From: Mytilus edulis
Lineage: Eukaryota
Reading direction: 5' to 3'
Length of the DNA stretch: 64,000 nt
Assembly (NCBI RefSeq): GCF_963676685.1
Contig: NC_092344.1
Location: 109,678,001 to 109,742,000, forward strand
The notes below the pieces were generated by a model, which worked only from the letters and a program-made list of their open reading frames with translations, did not search any database and had not been told where the DNA came from. Shown here piece after piece: positions 1,084-63,397 of this stretch (positions are counted from its first letter, which is position 1; each line of letters begins with the position of its first letter). The translations under genes and the position numbers were made by a program.

Positions 1084-1748
1084 TAGTGTATTGATGGACA
1101 CGTTTCTCTCTTTGCAAAGCATACTTCATTTCCATATTTTCACTGTTTTAATCAATATGTTACAAGAAGAATATCAATAGTCTTTTCAGTTTTCTTATAC
1201 AGTAAAAAAATATTCATTTGTTTACTTCTTTTTGCAAAACTTCTGGCCAAAATTTCACCTGAAGTTACAAGAATACAGTAGTTCACCAATTTTCGTTTCA
1301 CAAAGCAACTTCTTTTAGCAAACTCTTTACAATAACTAAAAGGGAGATTTTCGTTATAATCATGAATGTTTTAGAGCATTGATTCAACATAATTTGCAAC
1401 AATTTATGAGTATTAAATGAGATTATTAGTTTCATAGAAACAGCAAATTTGTTTAACTTAAAATGTCTAACAACTTTTTTTTCACTTAAAAGAAACTAAC
1501 AAATTGTGTAACTCAAGGGAACTAAGAAATTATTTTTCATTTTCTCTGGTAGCATTTTGCGCAATTGTTAGAACGAATATAAATGTAAGAAATATTCCTG
1601 TCTTGATTTAAGAATATGCTGCATTATCTTACCTCCTTTACATTTCTATGAGTATAATTGGTTGAAAGCAACCGCGTGTAGACAAAACAATTTATCAATA
1701 TAGGTTGGCCATTTAAATATTACATCGGCCATGATTTATTATTTGTAG

Positions 1749-1931
<183 letters not shown>

Positions 1932-2878
1932 TGAGTGTGGATAGTATGTTTGGATGTTTGACAGTGATTTATGATAAATGTATTTCTATGATTTTCCTAC
2001 ATGTGTTATTAACTGTGTTGCATGATGACAACCAACCTGAGCATTAGGAGTGTTGTTTATTTTATAGTTAGTTTAGTTTTTATGTTCATGACGGGCATGG
2101 AAGAGACACTAATTGCATTAGTTACCAAATGATTACGATAGAATATGTTCCACATCTTTGATTTTGGATACATTTTATAGCTAGGAGAGCAACACATAAT
2201 AGGTTCAATTTTTCGTGATTTTTTTAAATTGGGAGAGGATATCTGAGAACATGATATAAGGAGCCTGTAATTCAGTGGTTGTCGTTTGTTTATGTGTTAC
2301 ATATTCGTTTTTTCTTTATTTTTTGTACAAATAGGAGAAAGTCGAATACAGACTCAAGAAAGATTTAAGTATCGATGGTAGATTGAATTCTTGACATTTT
2401 ATAAATTATACAGTTTGTATCAAAGATTGTCAAAATGAGAAAGACCAATAAAGGGGCATTAGCTGTCAAATTCCTCTTCACCGATTTTACTCAAATTCTC
2501 ATATTTGAGTTATAACATACTAAAACTTATATTCAAATTACAAAAAGACTATTTTATATACAAGTAACAATGTATTAACGACATGAACTCGATAACATGT
2601 ATGGATAGAGAGTTGTCTCATTGACACTCTTTCCACTTATTTATATCAACATTTCGTGTGTATTTTTGTCTAGATGTCATTTAGTTAAACATCGAGACGA
2701 CCTTCAAAGAATGTCGACGGTCATGTTACCTGATATAAACATGCATATAATTATAAATAGATAGCGACCATATGCATTTGAATTTTTCTAGGTCTGTTTG
2801 ATTTCATATTATTGGTTTATAATATATGTTCGTCATCGTTTCACCTGTATAAGAATACAAATTATTATTTTCTTTAAG

Positions 2879-3145
2879 ATTATGCAGTACATATATTCCA
2901 TGATGCTTTACAAACTGGAGATTTCACCAGTTTCTTGAGACGTGACACCCGTCTTCCTATGATGTATATTGACGATTGCCTTCGTTCAGTCGTTCAGTTT
3001 ATGGAATTACCTAATAAGCAACTCAAACAACGAACTTACAACGTAACAGCGATGAGCTTTACGCCAGAAGAACTGGTAGCCGAGGTTAGAAAACATGTTC
3101 CTCACCTCAAGGCTAAATATGAAGCAGATAGCAGACAAAAAATAG
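2879..3145 (+). CDS. TDH: L-threonine 3-dehydrogenase exon
   Basis: DYAVHIFHDALQTG...RLPMMYIDDCLRS...YNVTAMSFTPEEL...DSRQKI; tttaag acceptor, gtgaa donor. Confidence 0.92.
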
Positions 3146-3671
3146 GTGAAGTATCCCCCTTCGATCTATTTCATAATAACGTCGTTAGTAAATCAGATTG
3201 ATTGATTGATTGATTAATTGATGTATGTAGGTGGTTTCGACATAATGAGATAGGGAATTATTTTTACTGGACTGGAAAGTAAGGGTTTGTTTGATAAGAG
3301 CAGCCATTTTGCCTACGCCAGATAACTTTCAGATCACTTAAAAACGTGTAGCAATGGTTTTCAAACGTCATAGATAACATGTATATAAATGTGTAGATAA
3401 CATTCATTGTACACAACGTACGGACTCGGAGTTGACGTGGCTGCGTATTTGTATATCACACAGAAAAATGGACTCCCCGCTTTATAAGTGTTTTGAGTAA
3501 AGAAACAATAGAATAAATGAAAATTATTGATTGTCAATATTGATTGATTGATTCTCTTTATTTCCTCCATTATACTGAATATTTTGTAACAGTTAATGCA
3601 AATTAGTATTTGAATAAGCATCTCATCATTTTTATCCAAAAATGAAAATGACTGATTATTTATATTTTCAG

Positions 3672-3847
3672 CCGATACATGGCCAGAAGTGTTTGACGAC
3701 TCAAATGCACGTGCTGACTGGGGATGGAAGCATGACTATGATATCAAAGGTCTCTGTGATATAATGTTTGAAAAATTACGACCAGTCTACGACACGGACA
3801 CCCATCTGGACGCTAAAGACGGAAAACAAAAGCTTACAGCAGCATAA
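3672..3847 (+). CDS. TDH: L-threonine 3-dehydrogenase terminal coding exon
   Basis: ADTWPEVFDDSNARADWGWKHDYDIKGLCDIM...LTAA then TAA at 3845-3847; ttttcag acceptor. Confidence 0.92.
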
Positions 3848-53150: not shown

Positions 53151-55680
53151 TAATGAATGTGAATCTAAATATAGGTCCCTAAAGAGTCTGACTAGAAAAT
53201 TATGTACTGAGCCCTGGAATGACAGTCTTAGACACAAAGTATTATATAATAAAAAGGAACTGAATAAACTTATAAGGAAAAAATATAGACAATTTAGACA
53301 TAAAATGATAAAACAGATTATAGATTCAAATAACGGCTGTCCAAATGATTTTTGGAATACAGTTAAGAAACTAAAAAAGGAGAACTTCAAGGATCCTAGT
53401 TCTAACATACAACCTAAAGAATGGTTTAAATATTTTAATAAATTAATGAATACTGATTATGATAAAAATGTTTGTAATGATAAGAAAGAGTATACTACTT
53501 TTAAAGATTGTAACACATGTACTAAGATGTTAAATAGTTTTATTACAACTGAGGAGGTGGTTATTGCAGCAAAATCTTTAAAGAATAATAAAGCAAGTGG
53601 TTCAGATTGTATTACAAATGAAATGTTACAAATATCTTGTTATATGAATATTGATGTTTATGTAAAATTGTTTAATCTTATACTTAAGTCTGGTATCTAC
53701 CCAACTTTATGGAGAAAATTTTTTATTAAGCCCATTTTCAAGGGTGGGTGTTTTAATGATCCATCTAATTACCGAGGTATAGCCCTTTCAAGTTGTTTAG
53801 GAAAATTTTTTCTAAAAGTTTTATATAACAGATTAGAAAAGTATCTTGAAGGAAATGAACTTATTTGTCGTGAGCAAATTGGATTCAGAAAGGGAAGTCG
53901 AACAAGTGACCATATTTTAACTCTAAAAACTATAATTGATAAAGCATTTAAATCATCAAAAAAGATATATGCCTGTTTCATTGATTTCAGGAAGGCATTT
54001 GATACTATTAACAGAGATGCCCTCTTTTACAAATTGTCTTATTACAACATAGATGGTCCCTTTTTTAGTATAATGAAAGATATGTATAAAGAGGTTTTGT
54101 ACTCGGTAAAGATCTCAGAAGGTATCACTGATTTTTTTAATTCCTCAGTTGGGGTAAAACAAGGGTGTATTTTAAGCCCTACATTATTTTCTTTATATAT
54201 TAATGATTTACCATCTATTTTTGACTCAACATGTGAACCACCCAAGTTAAATGATAATGATATATCATGTCTGTTATACGCTGATGATTTAGTCCTTATT
54301 TCTGAATCGGCTAATGGCTTACAAAAATGCCTTGACAAGCTTAGTTTATATTGCACTAGTTGGGATTTAACAGTAAATCTTGACAAAACCAAAGTTATGA
54401 TTTTTAACAAATCAGGTAAAAAACTTACAAAAGACAAGTTTGTTTTTAGTGATAATATTTTGGAACACTGTACAGAATATAAATATTTGGGTATACTGTT
54501 TAAAGCATCTGGTAGTTTTACAGAAGCAGTGAGACTTCTTTGTAAAAAAGCCTCAAAAGCTATATTTTGTATTAGAAAACTGTTATTTTCTGAAGATATC
54601 AATGTATTACCTCACTTAAAGCTTTTTGATGCTTGTGTTAAACCTATACTTCTTTACTGTAGTGAAGTTTGGTCTCTGTATATGATAAAAGATATTACAA
54701 ATCTAGAGTCAAAATATTGGTCATTGGCTACCATCAAAGTCCAAATTAAATTTGCAAAAACTTTAATTGGAGTAAATAAATCAGCTGTCAATTTAGCAGT
54801 ACTAGCTGAACTTGGTATGTATCCAGTTTTTATAGAAGCTTTAAAACTGTCAATTGGCTTCTGGTTGCATGTGATCAAATCTGATAACAATTGTTTACTA
54901 AAAGATGTATATTGTTCCAACCTGCAATTAACCAATGGATTTGCTAAAAAGATTGAACAGTTACTTGCTACTTTAAATTTTTCACATGTTTGGAAAAATC
55001 ATGATACTATTTCAAAAAGACGTTTATTATATGCAATTCATACCAAACTTAATGATAGATATCTTAATTATTGGAAAGAAAATATATTTTGTGATAATAA
55101 ATCAGTACATGGTAATAAGCTGAGAACATATAGACAAAGAAAATTATAAATTGGAAAACTATTTATTGTTAAATATAGACAGAAAAGTAATAGGGCATTT
55201 TGCTAAAATTCGTATTAGTAACAGTGTTCTTAGAATTGAACAAGGGCGTCACACTAAAACCCCTGTAGAAGAAAGAATTTGTCCTTTGTGCTTCTTAGAA
55301 GTTGAAGATGAATTTCATTTCACTTTAAAATGTACAAAACTAAATATAATTAGAGACCAACTGTTTTCCAAAATTAGTGAAATAGTTCCCTCTTTTTTAA
55401 ATATGACTAATGAAGCAAGATTTAAATTTTTATATACGTGTGTTGAGACTGATATAATTAGAATTATTGTTAAATTTATAAGCGATATGTACATTTCTAG
55501 AAATGCTTTATTAAGCACTAAATAACTGTGTGGTACCACCTCCTCATATAATGTTTATGAAATTGTTATGATATATATATGTTTGTATTTTTGTGTATAA
55601 CAAATTTGTATTGTCTTGGTATCAATCCTGTAATTTTGGATTTTAAACCAATAAAAATTACTTACTTACTTACTTACTTA
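53151..55680 (+). mobile_element. 5'-truncated RTE-X-like LINE (RT ORF 53152-55149, frameshifted C-terminus 55151-55525)
   Basis: YRGIAL, FIDFRKAFD, GVKQGCILSP, LLYADD motifs; C-terminal RIEQGRH..EERICPLC..EDEFHF..C; (TTAC)n tail; 8-bp TSD ccagacca at 53143-53150 and 55681-55688. Confidence 0.9.
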
Positions 55681-56770: not shown

Positions 56771-56879
56771 ATATTATGTTAAATTATATTTCTATATACA
56801 TGTATATCAAGTTATAGAATGATAAGCATTTACGTTTACTTCTTAATGATACTTAATGATGTTTTCCGGTACAGGATCC

Positions 56880-59577
56880 TCACGGTTCCTCTTCACCAGA
56901 CTCATATAATTGAATATTGTCTCCATTATTTCTGATGCTGCTTCCGGTTAATTCAGCTCGATAATCAGAATAATAGATTTCTTCGTACTCCCAGTATCTA
57001 TCTAGTCTATTTTTGAATGAGTTTATAGATGGCGCTTTAGTTACTTTATCTGGTAACTTGTTCCATAATTTGGCTATTCTTACAGAAAAACTGTTTTTCC
57101 TCAGACTTGTTTTGAATCGTTGGTGAATGATTTTATTACTGTTTACTCTTGTGCTATGTCTATTTTCAGTGCTTGAAATTAATTTAAGGAATGAACTCGT
57201 TTCTGGATCGTAATTACCATTTAGTATCTTATATGTCTCAATCATGTCCCCTCGGACCCTTCGATATGACAATGTTGGCAGCTTAAGTTTTTTCAGTCTT
57301 TCCGGGTAGCTCAGTTTATTGAATCCTGGTATCTGTCGTGTTGCCCTTTTTTGTACATTTTCGATTTTGTCGATGGATTTCTTTTTAAAAGGTGACCATA
57401 CAGAGCTAGCATAGTCTAAGTGTGTTCGCACTAATGTTTTGTATAGAGGTATGAAGATTTTTTCGTTTAAGTTTTTAAATGTCCTTCTGATTGCGGCAAA
57501 AGTTGAATTAGCTTTGTTCACTTTTTCGCATATGTGTCTTTCAAAGGTTAGATCTTCATCAATTACTACTCCAATATCTTTCTCTTCTTGACATTTACTT
57601 ATATCATGACCTAATAGTTTGTAACTTGTCTTTTCTTCTCTTACCCCTCTACTTATATATATTTATGTGTTTGCATTTTTCTGGATGGAACTTCAACAGC
57701 CATGTATCACTCCATTTCTCGAGATTTTTTAGATCATCTTGCAATATAGTTTGATCTGTTTTGCTTTCAATAATTCTAAAGATTTTTGTGTCATCCGCGA
57801 ATAAGTAGGCATCTGATGTCACGCAATCTGGCAAATCATTTATGTATAGAACAAATAACAGACGACTGATGTGAGACTTACTGGTCTATAATTTTTAGCT
57901 TGTGATTTATTCCCTTTTTTGAATATTGCACTCACTAGGGCGCTTTTCCAATCCTTTGGAACTACTTTTTGTGTTAAAGATTGGCTAAAAATGATGCCAA
58001 GTGGTTCAGCTATACCTTCTTTGACTTCAAACAGCAGTCTTGGGTGTAAATTATCAGGGCCGGGTGATTTATCCGTTTTTATTTTCTGTAGGTGTTTCAA
58101 AACCAAATCAGTGCCAATATTTAGTTCCTCTATTTTTTTATCGAATGGAATATGCTTAGGCTCTGGAATATTGCCTTGTGGTTCATTAGTGAATACGCTT
58201 GTAAAATATTCTGATAGTATCTCAGCCTTTTGTTTATTGTCATCTGTTTTTTTCGGATTTTACATCTTCTGTATCTACATGTAGGCCCCCTATACCTTCC
58301 CTGGTCTTTGATTTGGATTTTATGTAGCTCCATATAGCCTTTGGGTTTCTTTTGGCATTTTCAGATAATCCTTTTTCGAATAATTTCTTTTGTTTATTGA
58401 CTGATGTTTTGGCCTGGTTTCTGACTTTATTGTATTCAGCTCTTGTTTCTGGATCTTGTTTAGTTATAATTTTTTTGGATAGAATATTTTTCCTTCTAAT
58501 TAACTCTCTCGTCTTTTTATCTATTGGGAATACATTTCTCTTTTTTCCTATTTGTGTCATAGTTTTTGTTGGTACAAATCTGCTCTCTAATTCTTTTAAA
58601 ATGGTTAAAAAATAATTCCAATTTTTATCAATGGAATTTTCCGCATTAAGCTTATTATGCCAGTCTATTTTATTCAGCTCTTGAATAAATTCTTTGTAAT
58701 TTCCATGATTGTACAGATTAGCTATTTTCGGTGCTCTTTTTATATTTACATAACAGTTAAAATCAAAGGATAGGACGCAGTGGTCACTTTTTCCAAGCGG
58801 GCTCATATATTCTAGGTTTGAAATCATCTCTTCTTCATTTGTGATTAGTAAGTCAAGTGTATGGGGTGTGTCAGCTCCTCTCCATCGTGTTGGTTTTGTT
58901 GTGTGTTGGTACAGGAAATTATCTTGTAGTGCTTCCAGAAATTTATTTTCAGTGCTGTTTGGTCTATCCCCCTTTGTGTTCCATGTTTCCCAGTTTATTT
59001 CAGGATAATTAAAATCTCCCATAATGAGTATGTGTGAGTACCCCATATCTGTTGCCTCTGACATTAGGTTTACTAGCTTATCATTGTATTCCTTGGAACT
59101 GTTGGATGGGGTTCTATATATCAGACCCACAAGGAGTTTGTCATTTTGGTTAAGTTTTACTTTTATAAATAAATTTTCCTGAAACTCTGTCTTCACTGTA
59201 ATTTCTGTAGCTTCTAGGTTGGAGTCTACATACATTAAAAGGCCTCTTCCTTCATCTGACTTTATGTTTTTCTCAAACATTTTGTAATTTCTTACCTCTG
59301 GTATTGAATATTCCGCTGTTGATGGTTTATATCTATTTGCTTTCGGTTTTACTTCTGTTATACCAATGATATTTGGTTTGTTGTCTCTTGTACGAACGAT
59401 CAATTCTGACATTTTGTTGAATAGCTGATCTGCATTAGTATAAAAACAGTTCAATTTTGGTAGAACTGTAAAGTTATTTACATTGCCGTTAAAAACCTTT
59501 CCCTTCTTTTGTACATTTGTACTTACATTTTTTGTCTCTCTTTTCACCTTTTTATTTTTACTACTTTCCTCGCCCAT
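56880..59577 (-). pseudogene. CR1 ORF2 endonuclease-reverse transcriptase, frameshifted and internally deleted
   Basis: APE motifs (YTNAD, GITE, MGDFNYP, LDLL, SDH); KSPGPD; YRPVSLTS; LFADDTKI; CR1-type C-terminus (RGDMIETYKI, WNKLP, FKNRLD). Confidence 0.88.
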
Positions 59578-60521
59578 GGCGGTCCCCGCACTTTGAACAG
59601 TAAGTCCCCCGAGTTGTTTTCTTGAAGTTTTTTTGCCTCAGCCCACAGTCTCTTTTCTTCTTCTCTCTCACTTTTAGTAAGGTCATTGCTTACATTTACT
59701 TTTTGGTATTTGGGATATGATCTAATATAATGCATGTTTCTAAATAGGGTTAGTTTTGAGTCTATGCTCTTCAAATGGACTAATAGAGGTCTATTTGTTT
59801 TTTCTTTATCATATTTCCCTAGTCTTTGTGTTTTTCTGATGTTTTCAATATCCAATGTTATCTTGGCATCTTTAAAGAGTTGGACTATATTCTCTACATC
59901 ATGTTCTATTCTCTCTTGTTTATTTTCCGACTCATTTTCTGTTATTCCAAATATGATCAGATTATTTTCCCTTGTTTTTCTCTCATTTATTTCCTCTAGT
60001 ACTGTGGTTACTGTTCCTTGATTTGGTAGCACTCCACCTTCAATATCCTCGGATACAACATTAGCTACTGCCCCTCCATTTAATGCTTCTTCTTTAGCTA
60101 TTTCTCTTACTCTTTCCTCGTCACATTTGTGTTTTATAATCTCTTGGCTTACTATATCTCTTACTTCTTCTTTATCACATTTCTTTTCTATGGCGATTTC
60201 TATATCATTTATTCTTTGCTCATAGTTGTCCATGATCTCTCGGCATCTCTCTTCGATTTTCAGATCAGTAACTATGTGTTCTTCAACTACTTGTCTACAT
60301 GGGGCGCAGAACCACATTGTGTCTGATTTGCTTAATATTTCATATTCAGTTTTTGATTTATTTAAGCATTTTATGCAAAAATGCTCTTTACATCTTTGAC
60401 ATTCAAGGAGTTTAGCGTCTTCATTTTTATATATCTTTTGGCATATTTTGCATTCCCATGGGTCTTCCTTTTTTTGATCGCTTGTTACATTTGAAGTAGA
60501 TTTATTCCTTCTTGTTGCCAT
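59544..60521 (-). CDS. CR1 ORF1 protein: PHD finger, coiled coil, RRM-like nucleic-acid-binding domain
   Basis: CKIC...CQRC..HFC.KC...WFCAPC (PHD-like); RENNLIIFGITE...RLGK...RPLLV...NDLTKSER. Confidence 0.85.
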   Translation of the reverse strand: MATRRNKSTSNVTSDQKKEDPWECKICQKIYKNEDAKLLECQRCKEHFCIKCLNKSKTEYEILSKSDTMWFCAPCRQVVEEHIVTDLKIEERCREIMDNYEQRINDIEIAIEKKCDKEEVRDIVSQEIIKHKCDEERVREIAKEEALNGGAVANVVSEDIEGGVLPNQGTVTTVLEEINERKTRENNLIIFGITENESENKQERIEHDVENIVQLFKDAKITLDIENIRKTQRLGKYDKEKTNRPLLVHLKSIDSKLTLFRNMHYIRSYPKYQKVNVSNDLTKSEREEEKRLWAEAKKLQENNSGDLLFKVRGPPWARKVVKIKR

Positions 60522-60548
60522 ATCTACTACTATAGTTAATTTATTTAT

Positions 60549-61234
60549 TTTTATATAGGGCTTCCCTAAATGAAAATATATTAATTTATTTTTTTATTTC
60601 ATATAATAGAGCTTCTCTATTGTTAAAATAAGAAATGAGTTATTAATATTTTTATCTAGTATTTTAAAATTTAGGGCTTCCCTGAAATATAAATTTCTCT
60701 AGATAATATTATTTATTTTCCTGATATTAGATAGAGCTTCTCTATCTATAATTTTTTTTTCTAAGCTTGTTGTCCCTTTATTCCGCTCTTTCCTATGTCC
60801 TATATTAGGGCTTCCCTAATAGAATTGATCGTTAAGTTGTAATCTCCTTTCTATTTATCAGGACGAATAGGGCTTCCCTATTCGAACTAAATAAGTATGA
60901 AGTATGTTAATGCTAGATAGAGCTTCTCTATCTATTCTAGACCCCCTGTTAATTATTCTTATTTGTTCTATACTTAGTTTTGCTAGCTATCTCTGTATGG
61001 TCTTTTATGTTGTTAATTCCTAGAAAAAACAGGGCTTCCCTATTTTTCTAATATTTTTATTCAATTTTTAATTAACTTTTTATTCTATGATATAATAGGG
61101 CTTCCCTATTCTTTTTATTAGTTGAGTGATGTTGTTGATTTTCCTCTTTGCTTTATAATTAAGGCTTCCTTAATTATATTGCGCAGATCAATTATTTCGG
61201 ATCTAGTATGTTAAACAAGGCTTCCTTATTTAAC
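60549..61234. repeat. Array of 11 stem-loops with invariant GCTTC (minus strand GAAGC) loop motif
   Basis: ctt loops at 60561, 60612, 60677, 60737, 60811, 60873, 60923, 61035, 61101, 61165 and 61221, each centred in a palindrome. Confidence 0.9.
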
Positions 61235-61275
61235 TATTTTTCTTGTTTTTATTGTCTATTTTGCTGGCTATTTAA

Positions 61276-61813
61276 TTAGCATCCTTGCTCTGACAGTTCA
61301 AGTGCTAAATCTATGAATTTCAACATCCACAATTTATTTACAGCTCTTATGGGATGTACTCCGTCCGATGTTAGGTTGAAATTCTTTCTATATTTAACTT
61401 TAGTGTCTCTTTTTGTCTTGTTTGAAAGGATAAAATCTTGAGAAATTCTTGGTGTAGAATAAAGGCGGTTGATCAATTTTAGGTGGTCGTTAAAGTAGTC
61501 AATCTGTTCACTTAGTTCTTTGTCTATGTTTGTTGCCAATTGGACTTTTCTGTGACCTTTGGTGGCTTTATTTACCAGGAGTGACGGATATGTCTTTTTT
61601 TTTACTATTCACAATTAAGTTAATTGAATCTTTAGGTTTATTGGCCCTTGTGATCGAATAGTATGGACACTCTATAAAAAGCACTGTGGCAGATGGTTTT
61701 GTTGTTATGATTTGTTGTTTGAGATCCCTATAGTGTGTTAAAGTTTCTTCTATATTTTGATACGGTGATTTTCTAAACTGGATGGTTTTGTTAATTTCTT
61801 TTACATATATCAA
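61276..61813 (-). pseudogene. SGNH hydrolase/esterase-like ORF (ORF0), 5'-truncated and frameshifted
   Basis: VLFIECPYYSI...IDYFNDHLKLIN...LTSDGVHP..VNKLW (SGNH block V DxxH); the two ORF-track pieces are out of frame, probably at the T10 run near 61594. Confidence 0.6.
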
Positions 61814-63397
61814 TTATTGGTGTGCTATTAGGTGTGCTGTCCAATAAAAGCAGGTCCAGACGGTAACAGACGATGGGTCATCATATTCATACTTTTTTTT
61901 TACGAATTTCTGATTTCTTTGATATTTAATCATTATAATCAATAAAATCTCAAATTAATCATACTATACTTTGTTTAACCTATTTATAATTTTTTTGTAT
62001 ATTATGTTTGAAAATTATTTTGGGCGCCGTGATCAGCAAACTAATATTTCTTTGTTTGTTTGTTTTAACTGATTGAGCATTTGATTTTGACATTTGATAA
62101 AGGACTTTCCGTTCTGAATATTTGTACTTTTAATCTGGTGGTGGATTACTCATTGATTGAGGTGCTCCTTCAGTATTGGAGGAAGATATGGAATACAAGT
62201 TACAAGTTACATCGGAGTTCGATATTTTTGATTTTTTTTCTTTTTTCTAAGTAAAGATAATATTGAATTAGTATCTCAATAATTTGCAAACCGTATACCA
62301 AAATATTGTAAGAGACAGGGTTCATTATCGGAATTCATACCATGTTTATCCGAAAGCGGATTTATTTTTTAAATTTCTACTGGTATTTAAAAAATAAGGG
62401 AAATAAGAAATGTCAAACAGGGAACTAGTAAAAAATGTTCAGAGTCAAAAGTATGCTTTCTTTCAGGAACTTTCTCCGTTTTTGAAGAAGACTTAATTTG
62501 ACATCAAATTTTTTTGGGCATTAGGATTTCTGGTAACTATATTTTCTGAAATTAGACTTTTACAGACCAATAACATAACACAATCATCCCAAAAAATATA
62601 GAATGGAAGCACTGCAAATTAGGGAACGCCCATTACTTCAAGGGGGCGGGGTGGTATGGTGTTTTCCTAAAAAAAATATTCTGATCCCCAATTTGATGAA
62701 AAAAGATAATCTGATCAAGCAAAACTAATGACAAAAAATGTTCTGAATACAGATACCACTGTAGTTTGTACCTTTGCAACTCTCGAGGGGAGCTTCAAAT
62801 AACACCCCAACCCAAATATACATTGGTGTTGGGGTGTTATCCAATAATTTGTAACTTTGATATATTTTGAACACATGAAATTAGTAATATGAGGCATGCA
62901 TATAAGTGTTACCTGTGAAAGGGGACAAAGTAAACCTATGGAATACTTTGAGATATCATGTTAACTGTAGATGTATTATATAAACATTTACCATGTACAA
63001 AAAATGTATACATTTACATGTATTGTAAAAATTTCCAGCATGATTTCTGGTAAAAAAGTAATTGAAATACAGAAATATATCCTATGTTTATCCAGTCAGT
63101 AGGAAGTTTATGTATGATGTAATTTTTAATGTATTAAAACAAAGAAATGCTATCTTCAGGTAGCATTTTACCTTTCTCTTGTTTTAAAATATATTTTGAT
63201 TAAAAAACATATTAATTTATGCAAGACAAGAGTCAAATGAGATAATTTGTTCTGATAAATATCAAAATCTAAAATGGCAATTATAAATCTTTTTGAATAA
63301 GACAATGTACCAGAATTCAAACTAGACCTTGCAAACTTGCTGCTTTCATTGAACAGTGTGCTTTCAAATAATGCTGTGTTTAATTTTGTAGAGAATT

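Follow-up and report, generated by a model that had tools for sequence, protein, structure and literature searches.

A conserved array of AAG-triloop hairpins between two ORFs of a Mytilus LINE, with an inferred role at the RNA level

Many stem-loops that share a short loop motif, but vary in their stems and spacers, act together as multivalent sites for one protein in the dispersed packaging signals of single-stranded RNA viruses, including MS2, STNV, parechovirus and HBV pgRNA (PMC3662417, PMC5699041, PMC7612645). These are scattered through the coding regions of virus genomes and bind capsid proteins. The operator hairpins of phages MS2, PP7 and Qβ, and the hairpin series in alfamovirus and ilarvirus 3' UTRs that bind coat protein, are small hairpins recognized by loop identity plus stem shape, and binding next to a start codon can repress translation. 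They occur in nature singly or in small numbers, with different loops (4-6 nt or flanking AUGC), and are not known from a retrotransposon. Among LINEs of the L2/CR1 group, the stringent-type elements eel UnaL2 and zebrafish ZfL2 carry a single 3' UTR stem-loop that is read by the reverse transcriptase. Context for this recognition is given in PMC5135761. The mouse L1 5' UTR has repeated units upstream of ORF1, but these monomers are ~200-bp sequence repeats that act as promoter DNA. Polycistronic RNAs translated by leaky scanning, such as rice tungro bacilliform virus ORFs I-III, have a long AUG-poor stretch, including an upstream ORF with a weak start, ahead of a downstream ORF with a strong start, and no known hairpin array. 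Finally, LINE ORF1 types III (PHD ± RRM) and IV (esterase) have been described (PMC4120745, PMC3905857), as have GDSL ORFs shared among retroelement classes (PMC5408684). In the described types the esterase or the PHD module is the ORF1, and esterase ORF1s were found only in vertebrate groups (PMC4120745).

The locus analyzed here lies in a 64,000-nt stretch of Mytilus edulis DNA (GCF_963676685.1, NC_092344.1, positions 109,678,001 to 109,742,000; hereafter the window). It holds a three-ORF, CR1-like LINE that encodes a predicted SGNH-fold ORF0, a hairpin-bearing spacer, an ORF1 and an ORF2, such that the esterase-like and PHD modules exist as separate ORFs, 740 nt apart. Here, the hairpins are packed into a non-coding spacer in the 5' third of the element, and only a ~15-25-nt hairpin with an invariant G-C-closed AAG triloop is conserved, with compensatory changes, between unrelated spacers. 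The ~50-nt 3' UTR of the element has no GAAGC hairpin, so a 3' recognition hairpin of this type was rejected. The parallel with leaky-scanning RNAs concerns how ORF1 may be reached, rather than what the hairpins do. We found no description of such an array in the literature that could be searched, and a covariance-model search against Rfam 15 gave no match at E up to 1 on either strand of window 60300-61900.

The initial annotation, which had reported 11 covarying hairpins with one invariant loop between an SGNH ORF and ORF1, is correct in every detail of what it observed. GCTTC occurs 11 times on the + strand between 60560 and 61224, with loop-to-loop spacings of 51, 65, 60, 74, 62, 50, 112, 66, 64 and 56 nt, exactly as given there, and each occurrence is flanked by complementary arms. 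On the sense (window minus) strand of the element all 11 hairpins have one orientation and an AAG triloop closed by G-C. Elsewhere in the window only 2 of 61 GCTTC/GAAGC sites have a stem of 4 bp or more, and a covariance model of the hairpin hits only these 11 places in the whole window. The gap runs from the ORF1 ATG (60521) to the ORF0 stop, is 27% G+C and has no ORF of 60 aa or more. One correction is needed: the window copy is a 5'-truncated, frameshifted dead copy. Its extent was defined by blastn of a full-length copy (L015) against the window and other copies, and homology to other genomic copies ends at window 61800.

Table 1. Features of the LINE copy in the window. Hairpins are numbered in the order of the initial annotation; stems are perfect Watson-Crick pairs.
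Feature	Position	Strand	Stem (bp)	Energy (kcal/mol)	Remarks
LINE copy	56837..61800	-			About 4.96 kb; 5'-truncated by about 750 nt relative to the ~6.07-kb full-length copies; ~380-nt deletion in the RT region
ORF0 remnant	61279..61792	-			Predicted SGNH/GDSL fold, 264 aa in full-length copies; only residues ~94-264 present; frameshift near 61600; stop codon at 61276-61278
Inter-ORF spacer	60522..61275	-			Non-coding, 754 nt; 46% A on the sense strand in the full-length reference copy L016; only 1 sense-strand ATG
Hairpin 1	60556..60568	-	5	-4.9	AAG loop at 60561-60563; closest to the ORF1 ATG, about 41 nt upstream of it
Hairpin 2	60605..60621	-	7		GAG/CUC core
Hairpin 3	60673..60683	-	4		7 bp in two other copies; this copy, like several others, has a C·A mismatch on the sense strand
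Hairpin 4	60728..60748	-	9	-9.7	GAG/CUC core; identical to hairpin 7 over 22 nt
Hairpin 5	60803..60821	-	8
Hairpin 6	60864..60884	-	9	-12.8
Hairpin 7	60914..60934	-	9		GAG/CUC core
Hairpin 8	61024..61048	-	4	sense -10.8, antisense -7.9	Watson-Crick core at 61031-61041; extends to 11 pairs only if U·G on the sense strand is allowed
Hairpin 9	61094..61110	-	7
Hairpin 10	61154..61178	-	11		AGG/CCU core
Hairpin 11	61210..61234	-	4	sense -11.0, antisense -6.4	11 pairs including one U·G on the sense strand; AGG/CCU core; first hairpin after the ORF0 stop
ORF1	59544..60521	-			325 aa, intact; PHD finger, long coiled coil, RRM + CTD like L1 ORF1p (predicted fold)
ORF2	56880..59577	-			APE endonuclease + reverse transcriptase; broken into several frames; 1024 aa and open in one other genomic copy

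The extent of the ORF0 remnant was established by tblastn with ORF0 homologs. Pfam and PDB sequence searches with ORF0 found nothing, and only the fold search identified it: an AlphaFold model (pLDDT 86, pTM 0.85) matches GDSL/SGNH esterases and PatB of the PDB in Foldseek at E 1e-6 to 1e-4. The SGNH-like assignment of the initial annotation is therefore upheld. Conserved DSKG, GA, WLGTCE and DGVHP blocks are present, and D31, S32, G56, D236 and H239, corresponding to the Ser (block I), Gly (block II) and Asp-x-x-His (block V) set, are nearly invariant in 17 homologs, although block III reads GTCE/D instead of GxND. ORF1 has a PHD finger (PF00628, residues 24-75), and its model (pLDDT 82) matches the human L1 ORF1p trimer (2yko/2ykp) at E 1.4e-5 over ~210 residues. 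Pfam profiles PF14529/PF03372 and PF00078 match the 1024-aa ORF2 of a full-length copy and the window fragment. Copies end in ...CATTAAGTA(AGTA)n with variable repeat number instead of poly(A), and several, the window copy included, are 5'-truncated. The element is thus a LINE whose modules fit the CR1-like assignment of the initial annotation, with that assignment resting on the ORF1 modules and the tail only.

Two outcomes named beforehand as fatal to the observation, an unrelated satellite insertion and loss of the array or its covariation in other family copies, were looked for and not found. Tandem Repeats Finder at minimum score 30 detects no ~50-75-nt period and direct-repeat families cover only the hairpins, so the spacers within the array really are dissimilar. 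The region is present at the same place in all family copies and subfamilies, so it is not an insertion. Subfamilies in the same genome with ORF0 only 43-56% and ORF1 46-61% identical keep the order ORF0, array of 7-10 hairpins, ORF1, and a metagenome contig, whose array region had no DNA match in this genome, keeps 8 AAG hairpins plus two with variant loops; taken together, these lineages keep 7-11 such hairpins at the same place. Spacers between these lineages do not align, but the hairpins do. The loop has the same orientation in all 75 hairpins catalogued across nine loci. The 15-mer core occurs 41 times in 1.37 Gb, against 0 for the reversed control, and nearly all copies lie inside these elements. 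An ORF1 relative without ORF0 or array (L044) is a 5'-truncated dead copy and therefore uninformative.

On 51 distinct hairpins, 79.4% of distal stem cells are paired against 63.6% in shuffles (0 of 500 as high), the covariation score is 0.444 against 0.192, and slid controls are far lower. Pair types at one position run AU 20, UA 11, GC 10. The inner changes GGG to GAG or AGG are always matched by CCC to CUC or CCU (17 of 17). However, we note that this last count is not unbiased, since the 51 hairpins were picked by requiring the three innermost pairs to be Watson-Crick, although the 11 window hairpins were not selected that way. The first hairpin after ORF0 shows an A-U to G-C swap between family 0 and the metagenome lineage. 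Among near-identical copies, differences from the majority base are 3.0% in spacers, 0.40% in stems and 0% in loops (Fisher p = 4e-10), as compared with 0.49%, 0.37% and 1.97% at ORF1 codon positions 1, 2 and 3, such that stems and loops change as rarely as codon positions 1-2. RNAalifold independently gives a consensus 8-bp stem with a triloop, and the spacer folds better than shuffles (z = -6.25). Pairing decays in old dead copies.

Several features point to the sense-strand RNA, with differing strength. Internal G·U exceeds A·C, 14 against 6 per ortholog cluster, which is only marginal (p = 0.058), and at stem position 5 the counts are U-A 35, U·G 7, C-G 5 and C·A 1. Two window hairpins reach full length only on the sense strand, although the antisense strand folds equally well overall (z = -7.35). 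Sense ATG is depleted from the 5' end to the ORF1 start, whereas CAT is not: ATG counts are 1 against 8.2 expected in the 5' UTR, including under a first-order Markov model, 4 against 13.1 in ORF0, and 2-3 against 8-9 in the spacers of subfamilies D and G. In the family-0 spacer it is 2 against 13.6 by base composition, but this is not significant beyond dinucleotide content (2 against 2.9 expected), because TG itself is about five-fold depleted; the depletion does hold beyond dinucleotides in the 5' UTR, ORF0 and two other subfamilies. The ORF0 AUG is in a weak context (T at -3, T at +4), and the ORF1 and ORF2 AUGs are in strong contexts. Together with the ATG depletion, these contexts suggest that ribosomes scan through the array rather than land on an IRES.

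The interpretation in the initial annotation is partly supported. Its core inference, that selection acts on structure with a fixed loop and that this is not a simple tandem amplification, is strongly supported by conservation across diverged subfamilies, covariation statistics, a roughly ten-fold lower substitution rate in hairpins than in spacers and the RNAalifold consensus. Its three functional proposals, a protein-binding array, an ORF1 translation element and processing sites, are not separated by sequence alone.

We tentatively favor a model in which the array is a set of cis-acting hairpins in the sense-strand RNA, about 50-75 nt apart in the AUG-poor leader between ORF0 and ORF1, with two more in the 5' UTR, an observation that leaves out the 5' UTRs of the other subfamilies. 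What the data establish is that the hairpins are kept by purifying and compensatory selection in the replicating lineages; everything about function, including any protein binding, is inferred from sequence. In this view each identical tip would be a binding site for the same protein, and the array a multivalent platform that loads the LINE RNA into its ribonucleoprotein. The shared loop motif and variable stems are those of packaging-signal arrays. The most likely binder would be the element's own ORF1p, made just downstream, which has an L1-ORF1p-like coiled coil, RRM and CTD and whose trimerization and RNA binding are inferred from the fold; ORF0p or a host factor are alternatives. Ribosomes would probably reach ORF1 by leaky scanning past the weak ORF0 start, so binding could also feed back on ORF1 translation. 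Several points weigh against this model. L1-type ORF1p is known as a sequence-nonspecific single-strand binder, so a hairpin-specific mode would be new, and some hairpins have only 4-5 Watson-Crick pairs (-3.7 to -5 kcal/mol). The array always lies downstream of the SGNH ORF, and distant SGNH-ORF elements, among those examined (~150 other SGNH-ORF loci are left out), show other repeated hairpins there, which fits a translation device or an ORF0-linked role as well as it fits ORF1p loading. Hairpins and proteins also come from the same few lineages, so a link between loop and protein would rest on no independent co-variation. How LINE RNAs are picked out and packaged by their own proteins (cis preference) is a long-standing question, as is how a second or third cistron is translated from an animal mRNA, and in the well-studied L1 no specific RNA site is known. 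A compact, repeated and evidently selected motif next to a standard L1-type ORF1p and an esterase ORF makes both questions directly testable. The array also defines an uncatalogued structured-RNA family, and may be one instance of a wider use of hairpin arrays by mussel retroelements.

The closest rival, itself doubtful, is a translation device in which the array, perhaps together with the A-rich spacers, lets ribosomes express ORF1, and then ORF2, after or past ORF0, by promoting reinitiation, shunting or internal entry or by recruiting an initiation factor. The array always fills the gap between the ORF0 stop and the ORF1 start, with the last hairpin 26-42 nt before the ORF1 AUG in most lineages and the first 20-50 nt after the ORF0 stop. 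The ATG depletion and start contexts, the two hairpins preceding ORF0 and the other repeated hairpins of distant SGNH-ORF elements also suit this reading. However, ATG depletion over the whole 2 kb argues for plain leaky scanning, which needs no special structure, eleven near-identical sites are more than any known reinitiation or shunt element uses, and classical IRESs are not arrays of identical small hairpins.

A more speculative possibility, which we consider unlikely but not excluded, is that the SGNH ORF and the array downstream of it form one portable cassette captured by different classes of mollusc mobile elements (LINEs, LTR elements, tyrosine-recombinase elements). The hairpins would then be either the cognate RNA sites of the SGNH protein or a self-contained device that lets any downstream ORF be translated from a polycistronic animal mRNA, and either would be a new kind of eukaryotic RNA-protein module.

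A role at the DNA level is also unlikely. The palindromes could be sites for a dimeric transcription factor, or form cruciforms, and so build an internal promoter or enhancer of repeated units, as in the mouse L1 monomer arrays. LINE promoters are internal and often repetitive, the core GGGAAGCCC resembles ETS (GGAA) and Rel (GGGN3CCC) sites, the 5' end of the element carries tandem TTCCGG motifs, and both strands are equally palindromic. However, the symmetrical double changes, never single-sided in the 17 cases above, and arbitrary distal stems of up to 11 bp are expected for base pairing and not for half-site recognition, and the ETS or NF-kB reading was rejected on the double changes. The GAG variant destroys the GGAA core, G·U exceeds A·C on the sense strand, ATG is depleted on the sense strand only, and the loss of pairing in old dead copies indicates that nothing at the DNA level maintains it. 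A stable d(GCGAAGC)-type mini-hairpin and a boxB-type GNRA-like pentaloop were likewise rejected, because the closing pairs do not fit.

RNA-processing or stability sites, at which a nuclease or protective factor would cut the polycistronic RNA into separate messages or shield the A-rich RNA, are very unlikely. Conserved hairpins with unique spacers resemble arrays processed at each repeat, and the position between cistrons would suit a separation of messages, but a LINE must keep its RNA full-length to be copied, the stems are too short for Drosha/Dicer-type enzymes, no conserved flanking cleavage motif appears outside the stem, and no feature points to processing sites. An origin without function, as a by-product of template switching, snap-back synthesis or a decayed minisatellite, is all but ruled out by the low hairpin substitution rate, the unalignable spacers, the invariant loop and orientation, the lack of a tandem period and the decay of pairing in old copies, although the identity of hairpins 4 and 7 shows some copying between units.

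Within window positions 60400–61400, eleven GCTTC pentamers lie on the + strand. All eleven are on this one strand, out of 72 pentamers of either orientation in the whole window, and each forms the center of an inverted repeat with a 3-nt gap. The perfect Watson-Crick stems are 5, 7, 4, 9, 8, 9, 9, 4, 7, 11, and 4 bp, and the loop spacings, which are exactly those listed in the initial annotation, are 51, 65, 60, 74, 62, 50, 112, 66, 64, and 56 nt. Outside the array only 2 of 61 such pentamers have a stem of 4 bp or more, and a covariance model built from related hairpins hits nothing else in the 64 kb. Tandem Repeats Finder detects no ∼60-nt period, and direct-repeat families cover only the hairpins. 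The interval that contains the array has no open reading frame (ORF) of 60 aa or more and is 27% G+C. The array as initially annotated is therefore confirmed.

Coordinates of the element, the hairpin array, and associated features
Location	Strand	Feature
window 60560–61224	+	Eleven GCTTC pentamers
window 60522–61275		754-nt interval containing the array
window 56837–61800	−	Window copy of the LINE
window 61794–62065		Different interspersed repeat abutting the truncated 5′ end of the LINE copy
window 53305–55525	+	Further long ORFs (614 aa and 124 aa) just beyond the 3′ end of the LINE
L016:8270–8284		5′ end of a full-length copy (L016); same in L015, L017, and L019
L016 sense 1717–3721	sense	5′ UTR, ORF0, and spacer, examined for dinucleotide content
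G000 (genome assembly) C11:24819343–24824501 and C11:31348228–31353358 (L010–L013)		Two older copies with the array split by an insertion
L065:4761–4845		Repeated hairpins after a distant SGNH ORF
L064:1265–1400		Repeated hairpins after a distant SGNH ORF
L053:590–720		Repeated hairpins after a distant SGNH ORF
L052:740–900		Repeated hairpins after a distant SGNH ORF
L057:243–5884		SGNH ORF upstream of an LTR-type RT-RNaseH-integrase ORF
L064:599–5422		SGNH ORF upstream of another APE/RT LINE

The host element belongs to a family with about seven copies at 90%–98% identity in the 1.37-Gb Mytilus assembly; its ORF0 is 97% identical to a M. edulis protein and its ORF1 is 99% identical to a M. 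galloprovincialis protein. Full-length copies are about 6.07 kb. On the sense strand, which is the minus strand of the window, they comprise a 5′ UTR of ∼470 nt with two further hairpins of the same kind, ORF0 (264 aa), a 740-nt spacer with the 11 hairpins, ORF1 (325 aa), ORF2 (1024 aa; APE + RT) overlapping the end of ORF1, and a ∼50-nt 3′ UTR ending in an (AGTA)n-like tail. One genomic copy has all three frames open. The window copy, in contrast, lacks the first ∼750 nt and has a frameshift in the ORF0 remnant and a ∼380-nt deletion plus frame breaks in ORF2. The repeat that abuts its truncated 5′ end is present in dozens of genomic copies at 72%–78% identity, and the long ORFs on the opposite strand beyond its 3′ end look like another retroelement.

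Full-length copies begin GCTTCCGGTTCCGG, the first six bases of which are the exact reverse complement of the invariant hairpin apex GGAAGC. The tandem TTCCGG at this end reads as an ETS-like CCGGAA on the other strand. This could be a promoter motif, a pairing partner of the hairpin tips, or chance.

ORF0 has no Pfam or PDB sequence match. However, an alignment of 17 sequences retains the blocks DSKG, GA, WLGTCE, and DGVHP, and an AlphaFold model (pLDDT 86) matches GDSL/SGNH esterases, such that the initial identification of an SGNH ORF is correct. ORF1p has a PHD finger, as well as a predicted long coiled coil and an RRM + CTD that match the human L1 ORF1p trimer. Esterase-type and PHD-type ORF1s are treated in the literature as alternative ORF1 types (PMC4120745, PMC3905857), but here both are present as separate ORFs. 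The initial annotation described the element as a CR1 retrotransposon; we regard “CR1-like” as a provisional designation.

Four independent lines of evidence show that the array is under selection. The first is its depth of conservation. A protein search of the genome with ORF1 identified diverged subfamilies with 46%–61% identity in ORF1 and 43%–56% identity in ORF0. Every one that reaches far enough upstream has 7–10 hairpins with the same G-AAG-C tip, filling the gap between ORF0 and ORF1. A metagenome contig (L051), the ORF0 of which is 61% identical, has 8 such hairpins plus two with loops AAA and AAU, and its array region had no DNA match in this genome. The spacers cannot be aligned between these lineages, while the hairpins line up.

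The second is covariation. In an alignment of 51 distinct hairpins, 79.4% of cells pair, compared with 63.6% after shuffling of partners (0 of 500 shuffles as high), and the covariation score is 0.444 against 0.192. Sliding the partner by 1–3 columns reduces pairing to 28%–54%. We note that the hairpins compared are paralogs and orthologs from a handful of lineages, so the shuffle statistics overstate independence, although the number of distinct pair types and the substitution-rate contrast described below do not depend on this. The three innermost pairs were required for inclusion in this wider set and are therefore biased there, whereas in the window itself all 11 sites qualified without selection. 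The outer pairs were not selected and carry the signal; position 6 from the loop, for example, has AU 20, UA 11, and GC 10. Inner GGG becomes GAG or AGG only together with CUC or CCU (17 of 17). RNAalifold independently returns an 8-bp stem with a triloop.

The third is the substitution rate among the near-identical copies, measured as differences from the majority base. Spacer columns differ at 3.0%, stems at 0.40%, and loops at 0% (Fisher p = 4e-10), while in ORF1 of the same copies codon positions 1, 2, and 3 differ at 0.49%, 0.37%, and 1.97%, respectively. The copies therefore diverged largely under selection in the active lineage, with the hairpins as constrained as amino-acid-determining positions and the spacers drifting like third positions. 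The fourth is decay. Old copies at 84%–89% identity show broken stems and a mutated closing pair, so nothing at the DNA level keeps the palindromes after insertion. In two of these older copies, the array is split by the same ∼4-kb insertion between hairpins 9 and 10; they look like a segmental duplication of one nested insertion, and their hairpins are partly decayed.

The palindromes fold on both strands (z = −6.25 sense, −7.35 antisense), but three asymmetries favor the sense RNA. First, the loop is AAG on the sense strand in all 75 hairpins catalogued across nine loci, including the pair in the 5′ UTR. Second, internal non-Watson-Crick pairs are more often G·U than A·C on the sense strand, although counted once per orthologue cluster the numbers are only 14 against 6 (p = 0.058). 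At stem position 5 the series is U-A 35, U·G 7, C-G 5, and C·A 1, which is the usual RNA path between U-A and C-G. Hairpins 8 and 11 of the window reach 11 pairs only on the sense strand (−10.8 and −11.0 kcal/mol, compared with −7.9 and −6.4 kcal/mol). Third, ATG is depleted on the sense strand only, from the 5′ UTR through the spacer but not in ORF1 or ORF2.

Sense-strand ATG counts by region of the element (family 0, the family of the window copy; D and G, diverged subfamilies)
Region	ATG observed	ATG expected	Remark
5′ UTR	1	8.2	also under a first-order Markov model; CAT 14
ORF0	4	13.1	
Spacer, subfamily D	2	∼8	
Spacer, subfamily G	3	∼9	
Spacer, family 0	2	13.6 by base composition	explained by a five-fold shortage of TG; Markov expectation 2.9
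ORF1	not depleted		
ORF2	not depleted		

In the family-0 spacer TG dinucleotides are about five-fold rarer than expected on the sense strand, while CA is not depleted, which goes beyond what avoidance of ATG alone would need. The ORF0 AUG has T at −3 and +4, whereas the ORF1 and ORF2 AUGs have G at −3 and +4. Considered together, these features are the signature of a leader crossed by scanning ribosomes, as in leaky-scanning polycistronic RNAs, although the strand evidence is suggestive rather than conclusive.

What the analysis establishes is that a repeated, strand-oriented hairpin with an invariant tip, under purifying and compensatory selection, lies in the untranslated stretches of the 5′ third of a three-ORF LINE RNA; its function, including any protein binding, is inferred from sequence alone. 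The interpretation in the initial annotation, which proposed selection on structure and a protein-binding, translation-initiation, or RNA-processing role, is supported in part, namely for the selection on structure. Identical tips on stems of free sequence are what a protein that reads loop plus shape would select, and eleven of them at 50–75-nt spacing would make a multivalent platform. The obvious candidates for the binding protein are ORF1p, an L1-type RNA binder by predicted fold that would be translated immediately downstream, ORF0p, in which a conserved basic N-terminal helix precedes the predicted esterase core, or a host factor. We favor this model only tentatively.

A close rival, although on balance less likely, is a device for translating ORF1 after ORF0. 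It is favored by the constant position of the array between the two ORFs and by the fixed distance of the last hairpin from the ORF1 AUG, but it is weakened because leaky scanning already explains access to ORF1 and because no known reinitiation or shunt element is an array of eleven identical small hairpins. DNA-level promoter repeats are unlikely, processing sites more so, and an absence of function is very improbable.

Rfam contains no match to the array, and full-text literature searches found no description of a hairpin array in a LINE. The nearest concepts are the dispersed packaging signals of RNA viruses and phage operator hairpins.

The SGNH-ORF family is abundant in this genome, with at least 153 matches, many of them with open frames of 245–290 aa. 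In metagenome contigs it precedes an LTR-type pol (L057) and another APE/RT LINE (L064), which echoes the sharing of GDSL ORFs among retroelement classes in rotifers (PMC5408684). It is possible that the array belongs to the SGNH module rather than to the LINE. Some distant SGNH-ORF elements (L065, L064, L053, and L052; 25%–35% identity to ORF0) carry pairs of other repeated hairpins within ∼200 nt after the stop of the ORF, for example a 7-bp stem with an AATWGC loop that occurs twice in L065. L052 has one G-AAG-C hairpin, at 22.6 bits, and a look-alike with loop ATTG.
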